From assembly GCF_052425735.1 (NCBI RefSeq), contig NC_135763.1, positions 15,128,001 to 15,192,000 of the forward strand: 64,000 bases of DNA, given 5' to 3'. Origin of the DNA: Oculina patagonica. Its lineage: Eukaryota. The position numbers and the translations under genes are program-made. Below are positions 37,557 to 59,721 of this stretch, piece after piece. Within the stretch, counting starts at the first letter, position 1, and every line of letters begins with the position of its first letter. Below the pieces are notes generated by a model. The model worked only from the letters and a program-made list of their open reading frames with translations, made no database searches and was not told the DNA's origin.

Positions 37557-40500
37557 TCATTTCTTCATTGATTTCCTTATTAATGCCAACCTCTGCAAGA
37601 AAAAAACAAATAAAGAACAGTCTTGTGGAGGAAGTTGCTTTTCTGAAGAAGTGAACAAACACCTTTTGCCAAGTCGCTCTTGCACTGACCTGTTTATGAG
37701 CCTCTGTTGTCGCCTGTTTCTTAAATGGTCGAAGTTCATCACTACCAAATCCTGGAATCCACATGTTCCAACACCTTTCTAAAATGTAAACAACAGTGCA
37801 CACATAAAAAAAATGTAAATTTATAGGCATGATTCTAGAACACCCGGTCACTTTTCTGAAGAACTTATGCGACTACCACCGCGGTCGACGGTGTCCGTAG
37901 TAAAAAAACATGCAAATCAAACAATTATTGATTTTTGCAACTACCACCATGGTACATGGTATATGTCACAAGTCACGCCATTGTGATTCGTGTCAAGTTC
38001 CGCAGAACTTAAGCGACTGCCGCCGCGGTCCACATTCTGCAACTATCACCATGGTAGCCTCCCATAGGAAAAGCGATGAGGATGATTGTCTGAAAATTTG
38101 AATTAAAGGAAAAGGTAGAGCAGTTTTCAATTGAGTGTCGTAAAACCAAAACCAAAGTAATTACTCTGGCCAATCACAAAGGACACAGACAATCCAGCGA
38201 ACCAATCAAAACTCGAAGCAAATACATGTAGCTGGCACGAAGCGCCGGAAAACGTGCGCGAGCGAGTCACGATTGGTTTTGGTTTTACTCCTGATTGGTT
38301 GAAAAAGTGGCGCGAGATTTTTAAGCCAATCACTAAGCGTAGTAATGCAAACCAAAGCAAACGCAATTTACTTTCGACACTCAAGTGAAAACCGCTCTAT
38401 CACGAGGATTTTGATTGTTTTTGATCGAAACTGTGGTGTAACTACCTCTACTAGTTTAGAGAAATATCCTAGAACACCAAGAGGAAGATATCAACCGAAG
38501 TATTAAAAAAAAACAAAAAACAAATCATGATCGTTCATGGCGTATTTTTTTTTAAAAAAAAGTGCGAGAATGACTTGGCGAGAACTTGAACACTTCCGCC
38601 GGAATTTTTCAAGTTGTAATTCATTTTAACCCTTTCCACCCATGGGCAGAGACATTCGTCGGCAAGTTTTAGTACACTAGGTGGTAATTTATAACGAACC
38701 TGGACTATTACTTAAAGTTTCCGTTAACACTGAAATGTATTTTTAGATTTTGAAGTTACACAGATACCCGTGAATTAAACCCCTAAATGAGACCAATCTC
38801 GGCGTGGTTCAAGCCTTTCTTGAGCCCTAAAAGACATCATTTTTTCATGGCCGATCAGTCCAAGACACTAACACAGTACGATGTGCAACCCTAAACAAGA
38901 CCTTGACAGCTAAAGATATTGGCATCTTGTCCTGCACACCATAAATGAGACCAAAATCCATAATTTACACTCTAAATGAAATCGAAAGCACCCCAATTCC
39001 CTTTCATTAGGGAGTCCTCCCCCGGGGGGTACTCCGGCTTGTAAATGACGGGGATGATCGAATGGAGGCAAAACTCAGGACCCCCAAAAATCCCTAAGTC
39101 TTCCGACATTACCCCAAAAAATCCCTGGACCAAAAATAACCCCCCAAAAAATCGGCCCTTGTCAAATTACCCCGAACTTGCCAGGAGTGGGCTATAACAT
39201 AACACAAAGAATTCGCTTCGGTTTTGATTGGTTCACTGGATTATCATTCCATAAATAGGCCAAGGCCGCGTAAGGCACTTTAGTCCGTTTTTAATACTCC
39301 AAATTGAAATCCCCTATCAAAATGAAGTCACTCAAAAATCTTGCCAAATTTTTCAACCCAAAAAAATCCTGGAATCGAAAATTTCAAACTCCAAAAAAAT
39401 CTTTCCATCATCCCCGGAGTACCCCCCCCCCTGGGGTCCTCCCCCACCCCACAGGCATCAGTCAAAATTATGAACAAAATATTGATGTCAATGAAATACA
39501 AACCCAGATGCAGCTGTACATCTCGCACTTCCAGTGTGTTTGATTTTCGATGCTTGGCAATCTGACAGGAAGCTGTTACCACACTCTCAATGAAGTCATC
39601 TGCAATCTGCAGCAACATCTACAACAAGGACAACAAACAGTTGAATACCGAGAATCCGGCCCGGGCAACAACCGAAGGGTGGGGGGCAAAGCAGAGGGGC
39701 AACGGGAGGGCAGGCGGAAGGAAAACGCCAAACGAGCCCGGGAGGGAGACGAGAAAAACGCACAAAAAGCAACAAGCCCGCAGACGCACGGAGAGGGGGG
39801 CACCGGGGGGGGGGGGGGCAAACCGGAGATGCCAGGGAGGGCCCCGGGGGGCAGCGGGGGGGCAAACCGGAGGCAACTGATCGTTTTAGAAAAGTGGCCA
39901 AACGTTACTCCATAGATAGCTGTAAATTATCTTAAGCAATTTCTTTTTGAGAGGGAAGGGGCTTTATCTTTGTGTGTCTTTGTGTGAGCCTGTCTGCAGT
40001 CTAAACAAGACACCACACCACATGAGGATCTTTTGACTACATTTAAGTGGTACAGCAACATCTCACAATCTTCTGGCCCACTGCAGTGCCACTACATTAA
40101 CCATTTTATAAGGCATGGTAAGAAAAAAAGTGAGAAGAGGACGACATCTCTCTGTACATCTCCTTGGCTCTTGTTCTTATCACCATCCCACTTTACCACC
40201 CCTGGTCCTAGAAGATCATCTTGAAACTCACATCCTCAACATCATCATCCATCTGTTCACGAGGGTCAATCTCATGAAGTAAGTCTTGCAGTCGTCTTTT
40301 TGTCAGAACCTGGTTTGACGACGGGCTGCTAGTGTCTCCTCTCAATGCTGAACCTAGAAATTATCAAAGATTGCTATGTAAATACAATTTTATTTATATT
40401 TTGTTACAGTGTGTACCAGTAAATTCTAACTGATATCTACGTTTTCACTTGCTTTGAGTTTTGGTTTTTTGTTGATTTCTACCCTTTTCCAGGGTCCTAA

Positions 40501-46279: not shown

Positions 46280-50182
<3,903 letters not shown>

Positions 50183-51782
50183 ACATCTAATATATTATAA
50201 TGTACAGTGAACATTTTAATCAATATATAGATTGTAGTGTCAATAGACTCCTTTTGGGCCATTATTTGAATAGTCACGCAACAATTCTTTTATCGTGCGA
50301 TGACCTTGTAACACAATGCTGCATCTCCACAAGTATGGCGTGACAGTTTGAAGAACCATTTTGACAGAAGACTACAACATTATGAGTACAGCATTTTTAT
50401 GAAACAAATTCAGCTACAGTAAAATTTAAATTTGAGTAACGTTTCTTCAAGGAAAGCAAGGGAAAGGAAGATAAAATACCGGTGTTCTTAGTCTTTGTGT
50501 AGAATGATCAACTCAGGTTTTGTTTAATTATGAACTAGAATTTTCATATTTCATTTTACAACGTGAAGAGAGATTAGTAATGATTTCACATACGGCACAC
50601 TTTTGAAAATAATGAACCTCGTTACTTTTAAAACTACGGTAACCATAAAAGCTCTCTTTAAGTCCCTGAGGGTATATTTTCTTTTTTAAAACCTTTTGAA
50701 GGGAGGTTATTAGAGACGGGGGACTTAATTCAAATCAAATGTCAGTTAGGGAACATATGAAAGAAATAAAAAGGATTTTCGCTGTTTCTTTACAAACTTT
50801 CACGCAAAAGTAACAAAAAAAGGAAATGTGTTGATGGATAAGTATAAAGCTAAAATTATCTTGTTTTCTTGTTTAGGGGGAGAGGGGTATTAAAAAATAA
50901 ACTTCCAGAGGCGGGCTTATTTGAGCTTTAATCACAAGATGTACTCAGCAGAGAGTGTTCTGGAACATCTCTGATAAACACGATTTAATTAACTCTTCAG
51001 TCTATTGATGGTGTATATAAAAATATCAAATTTAATGCTTCTAGAAAACGTTTCATTGCAGTGCGTTAATAGTTTATTGCAGTAAGAAGTCTCTTTACGG
51101 TGAAAAACAGGAAACAGTTTGTACATCGTCGCCACTGCCTCACATGACTTGACTTGACACAAGAATGTTCTAAGACATAATTCTAAAATATTAGACACAA
51201 TAAGTAAAAAAACTCAGGAGCTTCTTGCTTTTAATTTAATCATACTTTAAGACGACCTTGAAGTGAAAAAAATGCAAAACTTTAGTAAATATGTGTAGTG
51301 TCACGCGTCGTTTGAAACAAAAAGAACTTTCTAGAACATCATTCATATAAATATGAAAATAAACAAGTAGAAAATTTCATCAAGTTTATTACATTTTCAG
51401 TAATTCTTTTGTGGTTTATTAAGATTAAAAACCGTCTAGAAACCTATCAAAGCTGCTATCAACCTAGCAGTAGCTAAAAATCTAGACTTATAGGCTGTAT
51501 AAGTGATATGGATGTTTCTGGACTTCTCAATCAACTTCTTCGTATAATTGTATCTTTTATGACCACAGTATTCTTTATGACCACAGCAAAACTCTGACAC
51601 ATTATTAAATGGATCGTAAAAATACGTTACATTGTCAAATAGCACGAGACATCAAGTGGAAATTTCTAGAAAATGATAACATTCTTACAAGACCATGAGT
51701 ATTGGACACTATAGTTAATTTAGCAGACGTGTATAAATGAATTAATGGCGGGAACTATCTTGGTGAATGTCCTAATATACGC

Positions 51783-53264
51783 TTACATCAGAAACCTCCG
51801 AAAATTGTTGATAGGAGAGGGGGGGGGGGCTACTCTAGAATTCTCTCTTCGCTGTTCATTCCTATTGTTTTCTAAATTGTGATCCCTTTTTGAAGATTCA
51901 TCTTTGACCCCTTCCTCACTCTTTTCAACAGCTGTGCATGAAACCTTCTGTTCCAATTGGGCAAGTGTTCTTTGCAATCGTTGTACTGCTGTTTTTCTCG
52001 CTAAGCGGATATTTTCGTCTTGATTTGTCTCAATACCATCCAACTCGATCAGGCAACAAGTGAGGATTTCTTCAAGGATCAGATATTCTTTAGTCTTGCT
52101 ATTGTCACTGAAATCATCGACTTTCTTCTCGAGTACTTCAGCTTTCTTGAGGATGCTTTGAATTATCAACAGCTTGTTCTTTAAGTTGCTTTCATTTTCT
52201 TCCGTAAATTCCTTTGGTAATAACGTACTTGCAGATTGCTCTCCGATTTCTATGACTACTTGACCTTGTTCAGTATTGCCTTCGCCTTCATTTATTTCTC
52301 CAGCAATATCGTCTTCACTGTTGTCCAAAATTTGTCCTTTATCAGTATTGTTACAGTAGTTGGTTCCATCAAAACTTAAAACAGTGTAAGGTTCGTCAAT
52401 TCTGAAAGTATCGCGGGTTTTTTGCTCGTTAACAACTTCTGAAACTGGCTTGGTAGTCTCCTCTTCATCTTGAAGGCTCGCTTTCTCGACTTCTTTGTTT
52501 TCTTTAATATCTTTATCCTCGCTTTCATTGGCTTCTTTTATTTCATCAATTTCAACCCGAAAGGGTACATCAAAAGACGTTTCCATTCTGTTTCGTCCCG
52601 AGAGGTTTTTTCCAATTTTCGGTTCTGAAAGATGGCTTTCCCGTGAACTTTTCTTCTCAATTTCATTCCCATCTTTCATTTCTTCAAATTCAACCTTAAC
52701 GGGTATGTCGAAGGATATTTCCTTTTTGTTTCGTTCCGAAGAGTTTCTTCCGATTTTCGGATCAGAATGCTGGGTTTCCCGAGAGCTTCCCTCACTGTAC
52801 GTATTTCGTCTTCCCAGTTTCACCGGACGCCTTAAATCCGATGTGTACTGATCTTCAAACACTTTCTCCAAATCTCCGATAAACGGATTTTCTGCGAAAA
52901 AATGCCTTCTTTGTTCTTTTCCATCGGGAACGTTGTGTTTACAAGGCCCCTGTTTGCAGAAGTGTTGCATTTTTGGATAACCAACAGGCGAGCTAGATTC
53001 CCAGAAGTTGTAATTTTGGTTGCTTTTTGTTCCATTTGTTCCTTGGCTCTGATATTCAGCCGCGGTTTGTTTCTGTTCTGGCTTTGAAACTTGTTCCACA
53101 TCAGCCCCGTTCGGGTCTGAAGTTTCCACAACCAATTTTAGTTTCGGTCCGCTCGGCAAACTCGAAGATCGAGTGAAAATGCGGGGTTTTCCCTGCTGGT
53201 CGCCCGTCGTTTGTCTTCTGTACTCGGGGTGAACATTGATAGGAATTTCTCTACTCATTGCCAT
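51783..53264 (-). CDS. BAG-domain Hsp70 co-chaperone (BAG3/starvin-like), intronless, 493 aa
   Basis: C-terminal BAG domain (TKEYLILEEILTCCLIELDGIET...IRLARKTAVQRLQ); IPV-like motifs EIPINV, DIPVKV, DVPFRV. Confidence 0.88.
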   Translation of the reverse strand: MAMSREIPINVHPEYRRQTTGDQQGKPRIFTRSSSLPSGPKLKLVVETSDPNGADVEQVSKPEQKQTAAEYQSQGTNGTKSNQNYNFWESSSPVGYPKMQHFCKQGPCKHNVPDGKEQRRHFFAENPFIGDLEKVFEDQYTSDLRRPVKLGRRNTYSEGSSRETQHSDPKIGRNSSERNKKEISFDIPVKVEFEEMKDGNEIEKKSSRESHLSEPKIGKNLSGRNRMETSFDVPFRVEIDEIKEANESEDKDIKENKEVEKASLQDEEETTKPVSEVVNEQKTRDTFRIDEPYTVLSFDGTNYCNNTDKGQILDNSEDDIAGEINEGEGNTEQGQVVIEIGEQSASTLLPKEFTEENESNLKNKLLIIQSILKKAEVLEKKVDDFSDNSKTKEYLILEEILTCCLIELDGIETNQDENIRLARKTAVQRLQRTLAQLEQKVSCTAVEKSEEGVKDESSKRDHNLENNRNEQRRENSRVAPPPSPINNFRRFLM

Positions 53265-53538
53265 TCTTGAGTTGTTAACTGAGTGACTAACAAGACCTTA
53301 GACGCGATTGAAAATTCGTGAAGATTACTTTCGAGATTACCACAAATCAAGAAGATATGGATCAAGATTGAGGTAAACAACATACTTGCGATATTAGCAT
53401 GGTTGACTCGATACTTGAACTTTGTCACGTAAACACAAGTTCACTTCGCGTTTAACAATTGCGTGACAGTCTCTACAATCATCCAGAAAAGTTTTAAAAG
53501 CGCAGTAAATGCTAGTTTTATGGTATTCATCTCCGCTG

Positions 53539-53675
53539 TTCTAGAATTTTCAAAATAAATCGTCTATCGGAAAACCGATTTTCTAAATTTACAATTTCCG
53601 TGTTTCGTGAAAGTCAAGAAACCCGTGATTATTTACTTCCCGTTGTTTCGACCAATGAATCGTTCTAGAATATTC
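53539..53675. promoter_or_regulatory. Two perfect heat-shock elements and a CCAAT box upstream of the BAG gene
   Basis: TTCtaGAAttTTC (53539-53551), CCAAT (53652), TTCtaGAAtaTTC (53663-53675). Confidence 0.8.
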
Positions 53676-54860
53676 GGCGAAATTTTTGCGGCATAAAGAT
53701 TACCGCGATTATGATTCGTCGCGTGAGTACGGCATTTAATATTGTCGACACCATCTACTGTGTCTTGATATTATCAAGGCCCGAGCATAAAATTAGATCA
53801 TAATTGGACAAACAGTAATATTGTGTAGACTTATATAAGTCGCTAGTTTTGAGTAAGACCTGAACTGCTGTTTTTCGCTTTCGTTTAATATGCTTTTGTG
53901 CGGTGTGGTACGGTACCTAGTACAAAATAAATATGGAAAGTAATATTGTACTGCGAACTTTCAGGCTTTTGTCCTTCAGACAGGTTTCGGGTTTCTTTTC
54001 GTTCAAGTTCATATATTGTAGTTCTACCGGCAATTTCCAAGTTTCCATTTGGTAATATAATGTTTTTGACCGTTATGTTAATTGTTCCAAACATAGACTT
54101 TTCGCGGTGCAATCAGCCCCACGTATCACGGCCTCCCCAGTCCCCACCCCCCCCCTCCCCACCTCACCCCAAGACCGAGGAGAACGTCTACGCATGTGCT
54201 GAGCACCGTCCATCCGGCACCAGCGAGGAGTGTGCACAGGGAGACACGGACGGGAGAGAAGAGAGCAAGCAGCGGAGAGGAGCCGACGCCCGACCACCCA
54301 CCAGGGGCGGAGCCCGCACACCGCAGACGCCGCGTCGCCCGAGGGACGCCCCGAGACCGCGCAGACGGGAGAGGGAGGGGGGAGCGGACGACGAGACGGA
54401 CGACAGCCGGACCCGCGCCGCGCAGGACGAGACCAGACACCGAGCACCGGACGGGCAGCACGGGCACCGGAACGCGCCACACAAGGGGGACCGGAGGCCC
54501 GAGACCCGCGCCAGGCCGGCGACGGGAGAACGCGACGGAACAAGCACGGAAACACGACAAGACCACCGCGCGGCCGCGGTGTCCCGCACCCCTACCCTTC
54601 TCCCTCACCCCAAGAGAGGCTCACCCCCAATCCAACTCCTGGCAAGACTAGGACTCTTCTCTTTATAGATTTTTATCTCGCATTCTTGGGAAGAAGATAG
54701 GCCAGAGTTGTATCATATTGCGTGTGTTCTGATACAAAGAATACAACAATAATATTAATTCACGGGATTTTTCATCGAGATATGCACATACCGTAAACTT
54801 AAACAAGGAAGCCGCGTGAAAACCGCGTTGAGCTGGGCGACACTCTTTCCAGTCTTCTCT

Positions 54861-54967
54861 ATTGGCGCGGACAAGATGGAGGACGCTAGAACTTTCTAGT
54901 AAATTGTCTTCAAGATGTTGTTTGCTGTTAACTTTCGTGTTTAACGTCACGGCTTTGTTGTAAATAA
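54861..54967 (+). promoter_or_regulatory. Putative DNAJB promoter (inverted CCAAT, imperfect HSE, TATA-like)
   Basis: ATTGG at 54861, GAActTTCtaGTA at 54889-54901, TAAATAA at ~54961. Confidence 0.55.
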
Positions 54968-55072
54968 CTCCGGGAAAAGGTCTGGACTTACCTGAAAAAT
55001 AAAAATTAATGTAGCTGATTCAAAAACAGGAAAAATCAAGCAAGAAGTTGCGTGGCAGTCAACAATGAAACA

Positions 55073-57838
55073 ATGGGGAAGGATTATTACAAGATCTTGG
55101 ATATTCCACGCAACGCAAGTGAAGACGAGATCCGAAAAGCCTACAGAAAAATGGCTTTGAAATTTCACCCAGACAAGAACAAGAGCCCTGAAGCTGAAGA
55201 TAGGTTTAAAGACATTGCAGAAGCCTACGAGGTTCTCAGTGACCCACAAAAGAGGGAAGTATTTGATAAGTTTGGCGAAGAAGGATTAAAAGGAACACCG
55301 AAGCCTCCAACAAGTGCTGGTGGTGCTCCTGAATTCCACTTTGAGATGCCCCCGGGATTTACAGCTTTCACGTTCCATGGAGATCCTATGTCCACGTTTT
55401 CAAGAGTATTTGGAAGAGAAGACCCTTTCAGGGGTAAGCATGCTATATTATTAAAAATATCGAGCTTTAAGCTTACTTTTATCCTGCTAAAAATATTATG
55501 TTTACACAGTAGTTAAACTGACCGACAATATAAGAAATGAGTTTCATTCACTAAGTAAGGTTAAGCGTACGGTATTGATAGGATTTCCTAGTTTGTATTT
55601 GACTTCATTTTATGGCAAATTATTTAACAATCTCTTTTCTTACTTTTCGGCACATATAAATAGAATTTGAGCTGTGTTTTCTGAAGTAAAATTAAATGCA
55701 TATGTTTTGGATCAAGTTTACTCAAGCGTGCGGCTGAAGTTCTCGTAAAATTCAATTTACATGTTTTATTTTACGCTGGGGCTCACTGAATCCACTAGAA
55801 TATTTATTTTAATTGCTGACAGCGTGAATGTTTCAAACATATCCTTATTTGTTATTCTTATCCTAAGAAATGTAATTGTTATAAACTTGCGGTTTGCTCA
55901 ATTATAAATATTTTTAATTGTCAAGCAATTTCTGAATACCCTTTTGTTGTTGAACAATAGTGAACTGCAACTATTATAAAATATGGCAATCATATGGAAA
56001 ATCGTGGGAAACTTTGTGGAATTCAAAAAAGTGGTTTAAATCAAAATAAAGCAACAGGTTTGGATTACTCAATTAAAAAATGTTACTTTCTCTTGCTAAA
56101 CATTTTAAAGAGGCATTCTTATTTTTTTTTTTGAACTATCCATTTTTTGGGTTCAATTTTTACAAAAAAGAAAATGTTCCTGAAGAATCTAGAATGTTTT
56201 ATTGTGTTTACAAACAACCATAGGTCATCTGGGTTAACCTCATTAATTCAAATGTCCTGTGAAAGTAAAATAGATTTTTATTTTGAAAATCTGTCTCCTT
56301 CATTTTACTTTCAAATATCTTCCTAAAAGAGTTTTTATTTAGGTCATTTTAATTTGGTAAAATTTCTTCCTCAATTTTTATTTGTTTGTTTGTTTGTTTA
56401 TAATTAACTTCTGGTTTGGATGCAGCTTTTATTTCATTTCATGACCATGGCTTCCTATTTTTGTCTTGTTTAATAAGCTTTCAGTTTCAAGAAACTTCTT
56501 CTTTGATAATTATGTGAAAGAAAGATTCTTCTCAACAAGACATTTGCATGTTCTGGAAATCTTTTATGACTATACAAGTGTTTATTTATAATTTCAACAA
56601 GGGAAGCTTATGAAACAATGAAGAATATTGTGAGTGTGCATTCTAGATTTATCTGTGGTAACATATCTGACATTCACTGCTTGTTTTTGAGATTCCCTGT
56701 TGTTGAAAATATTTTTCTGTTCAAGGGTCTTCCTATCTAATGAATCTAGAAACTGTTAATTAAATCTTGGAATGTTCATTCTGGAATTAATAGCAAGGAT
56801 ATTATCAAAGTTGTGATTTTATGTCAAAATTTAAGTTGAAGCAGGACTATAGCTCTAGGCATAAATTTCCAAAGAGAAGGGGTTTACATGTGAGCTTTGT
56901 GTTTCAAGGGGGTTTTCAAGTACGAAACGAGAATCAGTCAGTCAGGTAAATATCAACTGGAAGGTAAATAAACTACTGTAGCGAGTTTTGATAAGCTGAC
57001 ATCTCAGTATATATCATTATATATCAGTCCTTTCGTGGGCCACAGTGAAAACTACTGGGTGGACCTATCAAGTATTTGCGGCTAACGGATGGCTTTCTTT
57101 CCCTTTCTTTCAGGAATGTTTGATCATGGATTTGCTATGCCTGGTGCATTTGGAGGAATGGACTTTTCTGATACTGGAGGTTTCCACCAGTCCTTCCACC
57201 AACAGATGCATCCTGGCTTCAATCGACAGAGGTCATCATCTTTTGAAGACATGCCATCGTTTGCTCGCAAAAAGGCCCAGGATCCTCCGATTGAAAAATA
57301 CCTCATGGTGACATTAGAGGAGCTCCTAGAAGGAACTACAAAGAAACTGAAAATCATTAAAAAGGTTCTGAATCCTGATAGAGTGACAACCCACACGGAA
57401 GATAAAATTCTCACAATTGATGTACGAAAAGGCTGGAAAGAGGGAACAAAAATCACTTTCCCAGAGGAGGGAGACCAAAAACCGCACACTGTTCCTGCTG
57501 ATATCGTCTTTACAATCAAGGACAAACCACATGCGTACTTCAAACGTGATCAGGACAACAACATTCTCTATACTGCCCAGTTGTCTCTGAGAGATGCTCT
57601 TACAGGGCACACCACGGCATCTTCAGTGCCGGTTCCCACATTGGATGGGAGGACAGTCAATATTCCTTTAAACTGTATAATCAAACCTGGAGCAAAACGG
57701 CGCATCAAAGGTGAAGGTCTGCCATTACCCAAGAAGCTCAATCAACGAGCTGATATGCTGGTAGAGTTTGAAGTCGTGTTTCCAAAGGAACTTTCCCCTG
57801 CTAGTATTGACGTGTTGAAGAATGCTTTACCAGAGTGA
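55073..57838 (+). CDS. Class B J-domain protein (DNAJB1/4/5-type Hsp40), 361 aa; exons 55073-55433, 57114-57838
   Basis: MGKDYYKIL...[11 protein letters not shown] domain, G/F-rich region, CTD ([16 protein letters not shown]). Phase-1 GT-AG intron. Confidence 0.95.
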
Positions 57839-59721
57839 GGCTAGAAAACATTTACTATTTTAGCTTGAAGCTCTTGATGCAGCTATTTTAAATTATTTTT
57901 GAAGTTTTAACTTCAGCTAAGAGTGGGTTGATCAGAACCACTCTTACTGATTAACATTTTTGCTACTCTTATAAGAGTAGAAAGCGAAGGACACTTCGCT
58001 ACCAGTACATACAGTCAAATTGGGTGTCCTTTTTACTCTTAAGGGGGTGGAGATGAGGAGAAGAGTGAATGTTTAGTAGAATCTTAGCTGTTGTAAATTT
58101 TATGGTCACCATGAATGGGAGAATTTAGTTTTGAGTCAAGTAAGGCCATGTTTTGAGTTGTTATTGTGACCAGACCCCTGTTCAGGTGTGTTTTTACAAA
58201 TTTAAGGTTAAGAGAGGTTAAAATGGCCCTGCCAGGGTAAATTCAGACAAGCAACATGACCCAGCACATAAAATAAAATCGTGACAAACGACAACCCTTT
58301 TGGAAAAACTTAAATTCTGACAAGTACAAGTAATTTTCCTTCAATTCTACTACCGACAGCGAAGTTTCATAAAACAGCGACATGGCATATTTTTTAATTT
58401 AGACAAGGGACACGGGAAACCCCACCAGGCAGGGCCTCGTTAGAGAGTTACTTGTACAATATGCAGCATATTGCAGTGTTCATCAGTCCAACGTGCAGTG
58501 GGGATAGGCCAAGGTCCCCAGTCTGTTCCTGCAAGCTTGGAGTGGAATGTGTATAGGGAAGGGCTATGCATTGCTAGCCCTCATTGGAGGCTAAAATGCG
58601 AGTGGATCATGTTTATGATTATTTTTTAATTAGGTATTTCTCTCCAAAAACATTTCACAAGTAGTGCAGTCAGTACTTGGAAAGCAAAATAAGATACCAA
58701 GGCCCATTTTTATCCTGTTAACATTTGGCATGGAGTCATGTTTCTTTTATGAAGATGTTTGAGTTATTTAAGCTATTGAATTATTTAAAATTAAGTGCAC
58801 TGGATCAGAGGATTATTGGATCAATTTGGTCACACTGTTAAAAAAAAAAAAAAAAAAAAACAAATGGCCACAAAACATAGAGAATGAAAGTGGGTCTTCA
58901 AGCTAGTGGCAATGAAAGTAAATTGACTAGGTTTCACTTAGAAAAAATTCTTAGAAGAAACTATTTTTATTATTTAGCAAAGGTGTTTTATTTAACATGG
59001 GGAATTTGAAGCCCTTCTCGCATGTTTACGCAAACTAAAACAGTTCCTGGATAGGGTCTGGTGTGAAATATAGTATCAAATCTTGGGTTAGTTCTGAAAT
59101 GGCGCTAATAAAAATCGTTCATTTCGGCCCGAAAGGGTTTAAAGAAGTGTGGTGCACACTAGCTTCCAAACTCTTGGAGAGTACTTCCCTCCAAAAGGGA
59201 AGTGAGTGTAGTTTAAAAGTTGTTAATAATAAATTGTATTCAGGTGTGCTTTCGTTTAATGTTATCATCATACAATGTCAATTCAGTTACTTGTCGTTTT
59301 TACATCAGATGAATAATTTATTTCTCGTTTTCTTATGAATCAGTAAATTTGTAATGAGCAATTCATCTTAATTTATAAGCAAAATAAAGTATGGATACAA
59401 ACGTGAACTGTGTGCCAATGGCCAAGGTCTATGAATTATTTAGAATACAATTATCCCACACTGCCCATATCCCAGAGTTTTTTCTTCTTTTTCCTCCCAA
59501 CTGGAATTTGAATAATTCAATTGCGAGGGTAATAAGGGTGTTTAACAGCACTAGCTGCATTCACACACCTCAACAAACCTGCCCTTTTTTTCACCCGCCA
59601 TTCTTCTTGCATTGCTCCCCAACTGACTAAATGCCTGGAACAGGCTGTTGCGAGAGAGAGCCTTGCTTTGAAGTGACAAAAGAAAAACGCAAGAAAATTT
59701 CATTCTCATCCCCATAGCCGC

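Follow-up and report, generated by a model that had tools for sequence, protein, structure and literature searches.

A conserved head-to-head BAG-DNAJB gene pair set in a cluster of heat-shock elements in the coral Oculina patagonica

In the genome of the coral Oculina patagonica, a gene for a BAG-type nucleotide exchange factor and a gene for a class B J-protein (DNAJB) stand head to head within a dense cluster of heat-shock elements (HSEs). The question raised by this locus is whether it forms a unit through which heat-shock factor (HSF) could control both regulators of the Hsp70 cycle, or whether the elements serve one gene, have another role or arose by chance. The stretch that we analyzed, referred to here as the window, comprises 64,000 nucleotides (64 kb) of contig NC_135763.1 (positions 15,128,001 to 15,192,000 of the forward strand; RefSeq assembly GCF_052425735.1). 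Overall, our results favor the first of these answers, namely that both Hsp70-cycle regulators are encoded here by HSF-target genes in a conserved, divergent pair, to which we assign a probability of roughly 0.75; on this reading we infer HSF occupancy, heat induction and the sharing of elements between BAG and DNAJB.

With respect to the elements themselves, a perfect HSE was defined as GAANNTTCNNGAA on either strand. A regular-expression scan of the whole window returned six, each with at least three contiguous inverted nGAAn units in 5-bp register, all of them within 51324-56498 and none in the rest of the window. The original prediction had listed five perfect elements and none elsewhere; those five lie exactly where it placed them and the scan agrees on their absence elsewhere, while the total rises to six with the element at 53310-53322, which had been overlooked. 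The imperfect elements that it mentioned also exist, either as one-mismatch sites (50953, 54889, 56172-56199 and 56546) or as two-unit sites (51039, 51163 and 56770), and extended imperfect arrays of 4-6 units are found at 53310-53327 and 56172-56199. The optimal core TTCTAGAANNTTC, which occurs 740 times in the 529 Mb of the genome, is present in four of the six perfect elements, inside 2.35 kb.

The density of the locus is far above that of the genome, of shuffled sequence and of random genome samples, in line with the enrichment originally proposed. Specifically, GAANNTTCNNGAA matches the genome, on either strand, 10,889 times in 529 Mb (1 per 48.6 kb), a rate by which 0.12 perfect HSEs are expected in 5.85 kb and the Poisson probability of at least six is ~4e-9. 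Dinucleotide shuffles of the region (3000 trials) contained 0.18 on average and 4 at most, and 20 random genome samples of 10 kb each (200 kb) held 4 perfect HSEs, never two per 10 kb. When up to one mismatch was allowed, 15 HSEs were counted in 5.85 kb (2.6/kb), an approximately six-fold enrichment over the 0.43-0.45/kb seen in the remainder of the window and in random genome.

One rival explanation is that the cluster arose by chance or from base composition, or that it was carried in by a transposon, like the Helitrons with HSEs in Caenorhabditis to which PMC13104882 refers. The DNA is indeed GAA/TTC-rich and AT-rich, and a second cluster is present in the same genome at C1:3450553-3459299 (G000; L009, L010), where six perfect HSEs lie in 9 kb, three of them inside 113 nt. 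The surroundings of this C1 cluster contain open reading frames (ORFs) with zf-RVT, Herpes_teg_N (OTU-like protease) and STPR domains and are thus transposon-like DNA, resembling the Caenorhabditis elements. Because the genome is clumpier than the Poisson model, as the C1 cluster illustrates, the Poisson null overstates the uniqueness of the BAG/DNAJB locus. Nonetheless, chance and base composition are ruled out as its source by the shuffles, the genome-wide rate and the random samples, and a transposon origin is rejected because the HSE-bearing flanks of the locus are single copy in the genome. Together with the orthologous conservation of the sites in many species described below, the single-copy result effectively refutes this explanation, leaving it a negligible probability.

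The identities of the two genes, which had been called a BAG-type exchange factor and a divergent class B J-protein, agree with their domain matches (Table 1). The BAG domain is C-terminal (residues 368-440), and its closest solved counterparts are those of BAG4 and BAG3 (short type). Residues E398/E399, D409, R423/K424 and Q428, which we take to be the Hsp70-contact positions of the domain, are invariant in an alignment of 13 orthologues. The ORF also encodes three IPV-type motifs (REIPINVHPE, FDIPVKVE and FDVPFRVE) whose I-P-[IV] columns are invariant or nearly so in 13 orthologues, whereas no match to a WW domain was obtained even at E<=10. Because the WW domain is missing but three conserved I-P-[IV] motifs are present, the predicted protein is BAG3-like in function rather than a strict BAG3 orthologue, and it is probably also an adaptor for small heat-shock proteins by way of these motifs. 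The C-terminus is uncertain (51763-51874, with a G run at 51820-51830): the database product stops at residue 475, the ORF in the window runs 18 codons further, through the poly-G run, and DNA contigs of relatives show 78-85-nt differences at 51763-51874. As for DNAJB, DnaJ (E 1e-28) and DnaJ_C (E 1e-35) are its sole Pfam matches, and among solved proteins human DNAJB1 comes closest to it (E 1e-62). An N-terminal HPD (FHPDKN), a glycine/phenylalanine (G/F) linker, the absence of a zinc finger and the presence of DnaJ_C place it in class B.

Both genes are transcribed, as judged from assembled RNA contigs, a type of evidence unsuited to ranking expression. Of the runs compared with 51200-57190, two were taken as RNA, as intergenic and intronic coverage is nil and the 55433^57114 joint is present. 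BAG is intronless because a 2,355-nt RNA contig crosses 51226-53387 without a joint, and DNAJB yields a spliced mRNA whose contig begins at 54868. The BAG contig contains three perfect HSEs, at 53310 in the 5′ untranslated region (UTR) and at 51659 and 51324 in the 3′UTR; the latter two had been placed 3′ of BAG, a position that the contig corrects. The perfect HSEs 53539 and 53663 lie ~150 and ~275 nt upstream of the contig 5′ end.

Table 1. Features of the BAG/DNAJB locus and of related genes in the same genome; positions are those of the window unless a contig is named.
Feature	Position	Strand	Description
BAG3-like gene	51783..53264	-	single uninterrupted ORF, 493 aa; Pfam BAG E 8e-15
BAG mRNA contig	51226..53387, then ~235 nt more to ~50990	-	run X1, 2,355 nt, no joints
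DNAJB exon 1 (coding part)	55073..55433	+	J domain with HPD, start of G/F region
DNAJB intron	55434..57113	+	phase 1, GT..AG; joint in two RNA runs
DNAJB exon 2 (coding part)	57114..57838	+	remaining G/F region and DnaJ_C substrate-binding domains
Perfect HSE TTCTAGAATATTC	53663..53675		-399 to -411 from BAG ATG; distal promoter HSE; invariant in six species
Perfect HSE TTCTAGAATTTTC	53539..53551		-275 to -287 from BAG ATG; kept in nearest relatives
Perfect HSE GAAAATTCGTGAA	53310..53322		BAG 5′UTR; conservation poor
Perfect HSE	51659..51671		BAG 3′UTR, 112 nt past stop
Perfect HSE TTCTAGAAAGTTC (BAG strand)	51324..51336		447 nt past stop; ~50 nt beyond proximal AATAAA
Perfect HSE	56486..56498		DNAJB intron
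Imperfect HSE GAACTTTCTAGTA	54889..54901		DNAJB-proximal, -172 to -184 from ATG
Imperfect HSE arrays	56172-56199, 56546-56558, 56770-56788		DNAJB intron
Imperfect HSEs	50953-50965, 51039-51050		one mismatch and TTCTAGAA dimer, respectively; far end of BAG 3′UTR, converging with TRAPPC3
Invariant CAAGATGGAGGAC block	54872..54884	+	adjoins DNAJB HSE at RNA contig 5′ end; six species
GC-rich block, nearly T-free	54137..54583		447 nt; 346 nt with one T; flanking 35-nt direct repeats
TRAPP (Bet3-type) gene, last coding exon	50063..50182	+	convergent; bounds 3′ HSE field; TRAPP Pfam matches in syntenic loci
Second head-to-head pair BAG-2/DNAJB-2	G000:C6:15236531-15238258 = L059:1486-3213	divergent	ATGs 547 nt apart
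Third DNAJB-type gene	C6:15246204-15246683		8 kb beyond second pair

The pairing of the two genes extends well beyond this species. A word-indexed search returned 35 BAG relatives, to which a full HMMER search added four more distant full-length ones before falling to generic BAG domains; a word-index profile search found no new distant BAG relatives and one extra partial sequence (56% identity). BAG relatives are also found on Tara scaffolds. In every relative with enough flanking sequence (L001-L008 and L022-L024), as well as in five further metagenome contigs, DNAJ and BAG lie head to head. This linkage spans BAG identities from 70% to ~32%, L022-L024 being the most distant full-length relatives. 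The coding sequence of BAG is one ORF and that of DNAJB two ORFs in all head-to-head relatives, and the gene order amine oxidase <- DNAJB <- -> BAG -> <- TRAPP is kept in L001-L008.

Conservation is also evident at the level of individual elements. The MAFFT alignments are 47-60% identical outside their invariant columns, and these columns fall on three HSEs, namely those at 53663 (upstream of BAG), 51324 (3′UTR) and 54889 (imperfect, ~180 nt before the DNAJB ATG), each forming a block that is invariant in six species. Linkage and individual HSEs are both kept at orthologous positions in many relatives, as the original prediction would have it. When the window and L001-L008 were pooled (nine assemblies, related to one another), the 94.9 kb of far flanks contained no perfect HSEs and 0.26-0.53 one-mismatch HSEs per kb. 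The corresponding figures are 10 and 1.99/kb in 15.1 kb of intergenic DNA, 10 and 2.64/kb in the 8.7 kb that make up the first 1 kb after BAG, and 3 and 2.06/kb in 18.5 kb of DNAJB introns.

The conserved elements in the BAG 3′UTR are unusual in their placement. Counterparts of 51659-51671, either perfect or with one mismatch, are found at +112 to +204 in all eight of the other assemblies (L001-L008) and are perfect in L003, L004, L005 and L008, and the core C.AGAAAGTTC of element 51324-51336 is invariant across six species. In addition, two mRNA-like contigs of 2.2-2.3 kb that encode a distant BAG orthologue (L025 and L026; Logan contigs of SRR22097828 and SRR22097847) have a perfect HSE 265 nt beyond the BAG stop, and because it is present on mRNA-like contigs the 3′UTR HSE is transcribed there too. 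Such sequences might instead be kept as an RNA element of BAG, a TRAPPC3 3′-end signal or the signal of an antisense transcript, a proposal that we consider improbable. It draws on the fact that they are transcribed and sit ~30-60 nt past minus-strand AATAAA signals, in a zone that also has plus-strand TRAPPC3 AATAAA, and on a separate, deeper contig of run X3 at ~51045-51407 (depth 43 versus 3-6 over the BAG coding region). This contig may be the 3′ end of BAG or a long TRAPPC3 3′UTR that stops at the plus-strand AATAAA at 51358, and the convergent 3′UTRs of BAG and TRAPPC3 probably overlap. Against this proposal stand a conserved core that is the exact HSE consensus TTCTAGAAAGTTC, made of the same words as the elements upstream of BAG and at DNAJB, and GAA/TTC unit spacing that is kept while the flanks drift; in addition, no Rfam family matched in 50000-58500.

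In terms of the region between the two genes, the original prediction had assigned the HSEs 53539 and 53663 to a shared promoter. Their position near the start of BAG bears out the promoter part of this assignment, but the DNAJB mRNA begins ~1.2-1.3 kb away from them, or ~0.8 kb when the nearly T-free block of 447 nt is subtracted, and the sharing as originally worded is not supported. The distance between the 5′ ends of the two RNA contigs (53387 and 54868), which are not mapped transcription start sites (TSSs), is 1,481 nt and falls to 1,034 nt once this block is left out. The block is unique in the genome and is skipped exactly by DNA contigs of two related organisms (X15 and X16; joint 54136>54584); it represents either an insertion private to this genome or an artefact of assembly. 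We also considered that it might be a T-to-C hypermutated copy of genomic sequence and discarded the idea when a C-to-Y degenerate 34-mer matched itself alone. A second GC-rich block that, like the first, is near-T-free on the plus strand and non-repetitive (~200 nt with two T) occurs at 39681-39880 and calls for the same two explanations; 200 kb of random genome contained none.

On the DNAJB side, the conserved element is the imperfect HSE 54889-54901, within which GAACTTTCTAG is invariant in six species; the furthest relatives have the element at -181 to -205. Because the RNA contig starts at 54868, this HSE belongs to the DNAJB 5′UTR. In the alignment an invariant CAAGATGG.GGAC block adjoins GAACTTTCTAG, and the CAAGATGGAGGAC block presumably resembles the YY1 core AAGATGG. 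A cAMP response element (CRE)-like ACGTCA at ~54944-54950, also in the 5′UTR, is kept in the four nearest species. At the 5′ end of DNAJB, a candidate for a conserved upstream ORF (ATGGAGGAC...TAG) was rejected, its frame being broken in L002 and L004. Within the intron, the arrays at 56172-56199, 56546 and 56770 are retained in the two nearest species.

The rest of the genome provides useful points of reference. The HSF DNA-binding domain (PF00447) was matched in four places (best E 3.5e-24), and since this is combined with the gene identities and a conserved, single-copy HSE enrichment, the locus carries a strong pointer to HSF control. Two intronless HSP70 genes of 650 and 651 aa were also located (L011, G000:C3:26751947-26756764; L012, G000:C2:22230851-22235671). 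The former has a five-unit HSE array with a single perfect triple at -370 to -240 from its ATG, whereas HSEs are absent upstream of its HSC70-like twin, L012, a contrast that suggests an inducible/constitutive pair. Because one HSP70 gene has an array and its twin none, the HSE motif discriminates inducible-type genes in this genome, and the BAG/DNAJB locus exceeds the inducible-type HSP70 in perfect HSEs.

Only three BAG loci were found in a Pfam scan of the genome, and one of them, on the same contig and ~57 kb from the first pair (BAG-1/DNAJB-1), is again head to head with a J-protein gene. BAG-2 is intronless; its 278-aa product carries an IPV-like motif and shares 24% identity with BAG-1. 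DNAJB-2, on the opposite strand, is a single 350-aa ORF that is 58% identical to DNAJB-1 over the N-terminus. The 547-nt intergenic region of this second pair contains two perfect HSEs, one of them in a 5-6-unit array ~25 nt before the TATA box TATATAAAA, and has the look of a compact bidirectional heat-shock promoter of the textbook kind. All told, the three best DnaJ_C matches of the genome and two of its three BAG matches fall within ~70 kb.

The second pair bears on another competing explanation, in which the HSE field serves BAG-1 alone, DNAJB-1 is a constitutive housekeeping gene whose adjacency was simply inherited and the heat-inducible Hsp40 is DNAJB-2. DNAJB-1 is intron-bearing, compared with a DNAJB-2 that is a single ORF behind an HSE array and TATATAAAA; its promoter has a YY1-like block but no TATA box, its HSE comprises only 2.3 units and lies inside the transcript, and the perfect HSEs conserved between species are all on the BAG side. 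Set against these observations are the invariance of GAACTTTCTAG at DNAJB-1 out to the most distant relatives, the 4-8-fold enrichment of one-mismatch HSEs in the DNAJB-1 intron across the nine assemblies and a head-to-head linkage that is unbroken in >10 assemblies. We therefore regard exclusive service to BAG as unlikely, although not negligibly so.

The reading that we prefer, a divergent pair in which both genes are HSF targets, would operate as follows. Under proteotoxic heat stress, trimeric HSF would bind HSE arrays of the TTCTAGAA type. Those that are strongest and best conserved bracket BAG, at ~-400 and ~-280 from the ATG, in the 5′UTR and twice in the 3′UTR, and would likely make it a fast, splicing-independent heat-shock gene; by its sequence features, BAG has the apparent hallmarks of a primary heat-shock gene, being intronless with strong conserved HSEs near its start. 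The architecture of DNAJB, which combines a TATA-less YY1-like core promoter with a conserved imperfect HSE at the mRNA 5′ end and intronic arrays, would fit basal expression boosted by HSF, and DNAJB-1 seems to be expressed basally, with less input from HSF. The BAG-side HSEs, ~0.7-1.2 kb away, may help it.

Several observations weigh against this reading and temper our confidence in it. The conserved HSE of DNAJB is degenerate in its third unit, and its place within the RNA contig, in the 5′UTR and not upstream of it, is unusual for an activating HSE; the intronic HSE 56486 is perfect in this species only. The 1,481 nt between the RNA contig 5′ ends would exceed the spacing of a classical bidirectional promoter (<1 kb). 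Moreover, the pooled counts are not independent, because the compared assemblies are interrelated, and transposon-like DNA of the same genome is also capable of holding an HSE cluster (C1, 6 in 9 kb).

A broader proposal, which we put forward as a speculation with the odds against it, is that the head-to-head BAG(IPV)-DNAJB arrangement is an ancient HSF-controlled module for both regulators of the Hsp70 cycle, duplicated as a unit, and that the 3′UTR HSEs are functional DNA elements. The latter could serve as downstream HSF enhancers, gene-looping anchors or termination-enforcing HSF roadblocks. If true, an HSF roadblock would stop heat-induced read-through from entering the convergent TRAPPC3.

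Turning to corals and their relatives, HSF1 has been shown to be a determinant of heat tolerance in corals (bioRxiv 10.64898/2026.04.01.714264), and the HSE architecture of Nematostella HSP70/HSP90 promoters has been described (bioRxiv 10.1101/2025.10.15.682611). Heat-induced genes of cnidarians carry GAANNTTCNNGAA motifs within ~350 bp of the TSS and DnaJ belongs to the core heat response (bioRxiv 10.1101/2025.10.15.682611, PMC13104882), with more HSEs accompanying stronger induction (PMC13104882). These surveys differ from the present work in that their scans were limited to 500-bp upstream sequence, either of HSP70/HSP90 genes or of promoters in general, and did not report BAG, gene pairing or 3′UTR/intronic HSEs (bioRxiv 10.1101/2025.10.15.682611, PMC13104882). 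Our literature search found no paper linking BAG and DNAJB head to head and no report of BAG3 among coral heat genes. The direct targets of coral HSF1 and their cis-layout are mostly predicted from 500-bp upstream scans, and the locus, likely a core unit of the coral heat response as far as its sequence can tell, offers a compact, deeply conserved and HSE-rich target for measuring HSF1 binding, induction kinetics and species differences. It joins the supply of Hsp70 J-protein and exchange factor in a single chromosomal unit, and the second pair offers, in the 547 nt between its genes, a candidate for a heat-inducible bidirectional promoter that could be used in coral transgenesis.

Among known systems, the human HSPD1/HSPE1 genes (Hsp60/Hsp10) are a head-to-head pair with a heat-inducible bidirectional promoter. 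The coral locus resembles them in that coupled partners of a chaperone system are divergent with HSEs between them, but its partners are both Hsp70 co-factors, the RNA 5′ ends of its first pair are >1 kb apart and its HSEs are also found in a 3′UTR and an intron. In Caenorhabditis elegans, hsp-16.1/hsp-16.48 and hsp-16.2/hsp-16.41 are divergent pairs that share HSEs, and Drosophila has divergent hsp70 copies. These cases have in common with the coral locus intergenic HSEs and, to judge from the second BAG-DNAJB pair, duplication of the whole module; they consist of paralogues of one family, whereas the coral pair joins two unrelated families. Vertebrate HSP90-beta has a functional HSE in its first intron and is thus a precedent, in a different gene, for the intronic HSEs proposed for DNAJB. 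A parallel in terms of protein classes is found in mammals, where DNAJB1 is an HSF1 target. Mammalian BAG3 (Bis) is likewise induced via HSF1 (PMC4211124, PMC6019875). The coral genes belong to the same classes and have the same presumed regulator, with IPV motifs and a short BAG domain in the coral BAG, but the mammalian genes are unlinked and intron-bearing, unlike the coral BAG gene, which is intronless and without a WW domain. We regard the finding as real, useful and conserved; in mechanism it is of a well-known kind, the gene pair of an HSF regulon.

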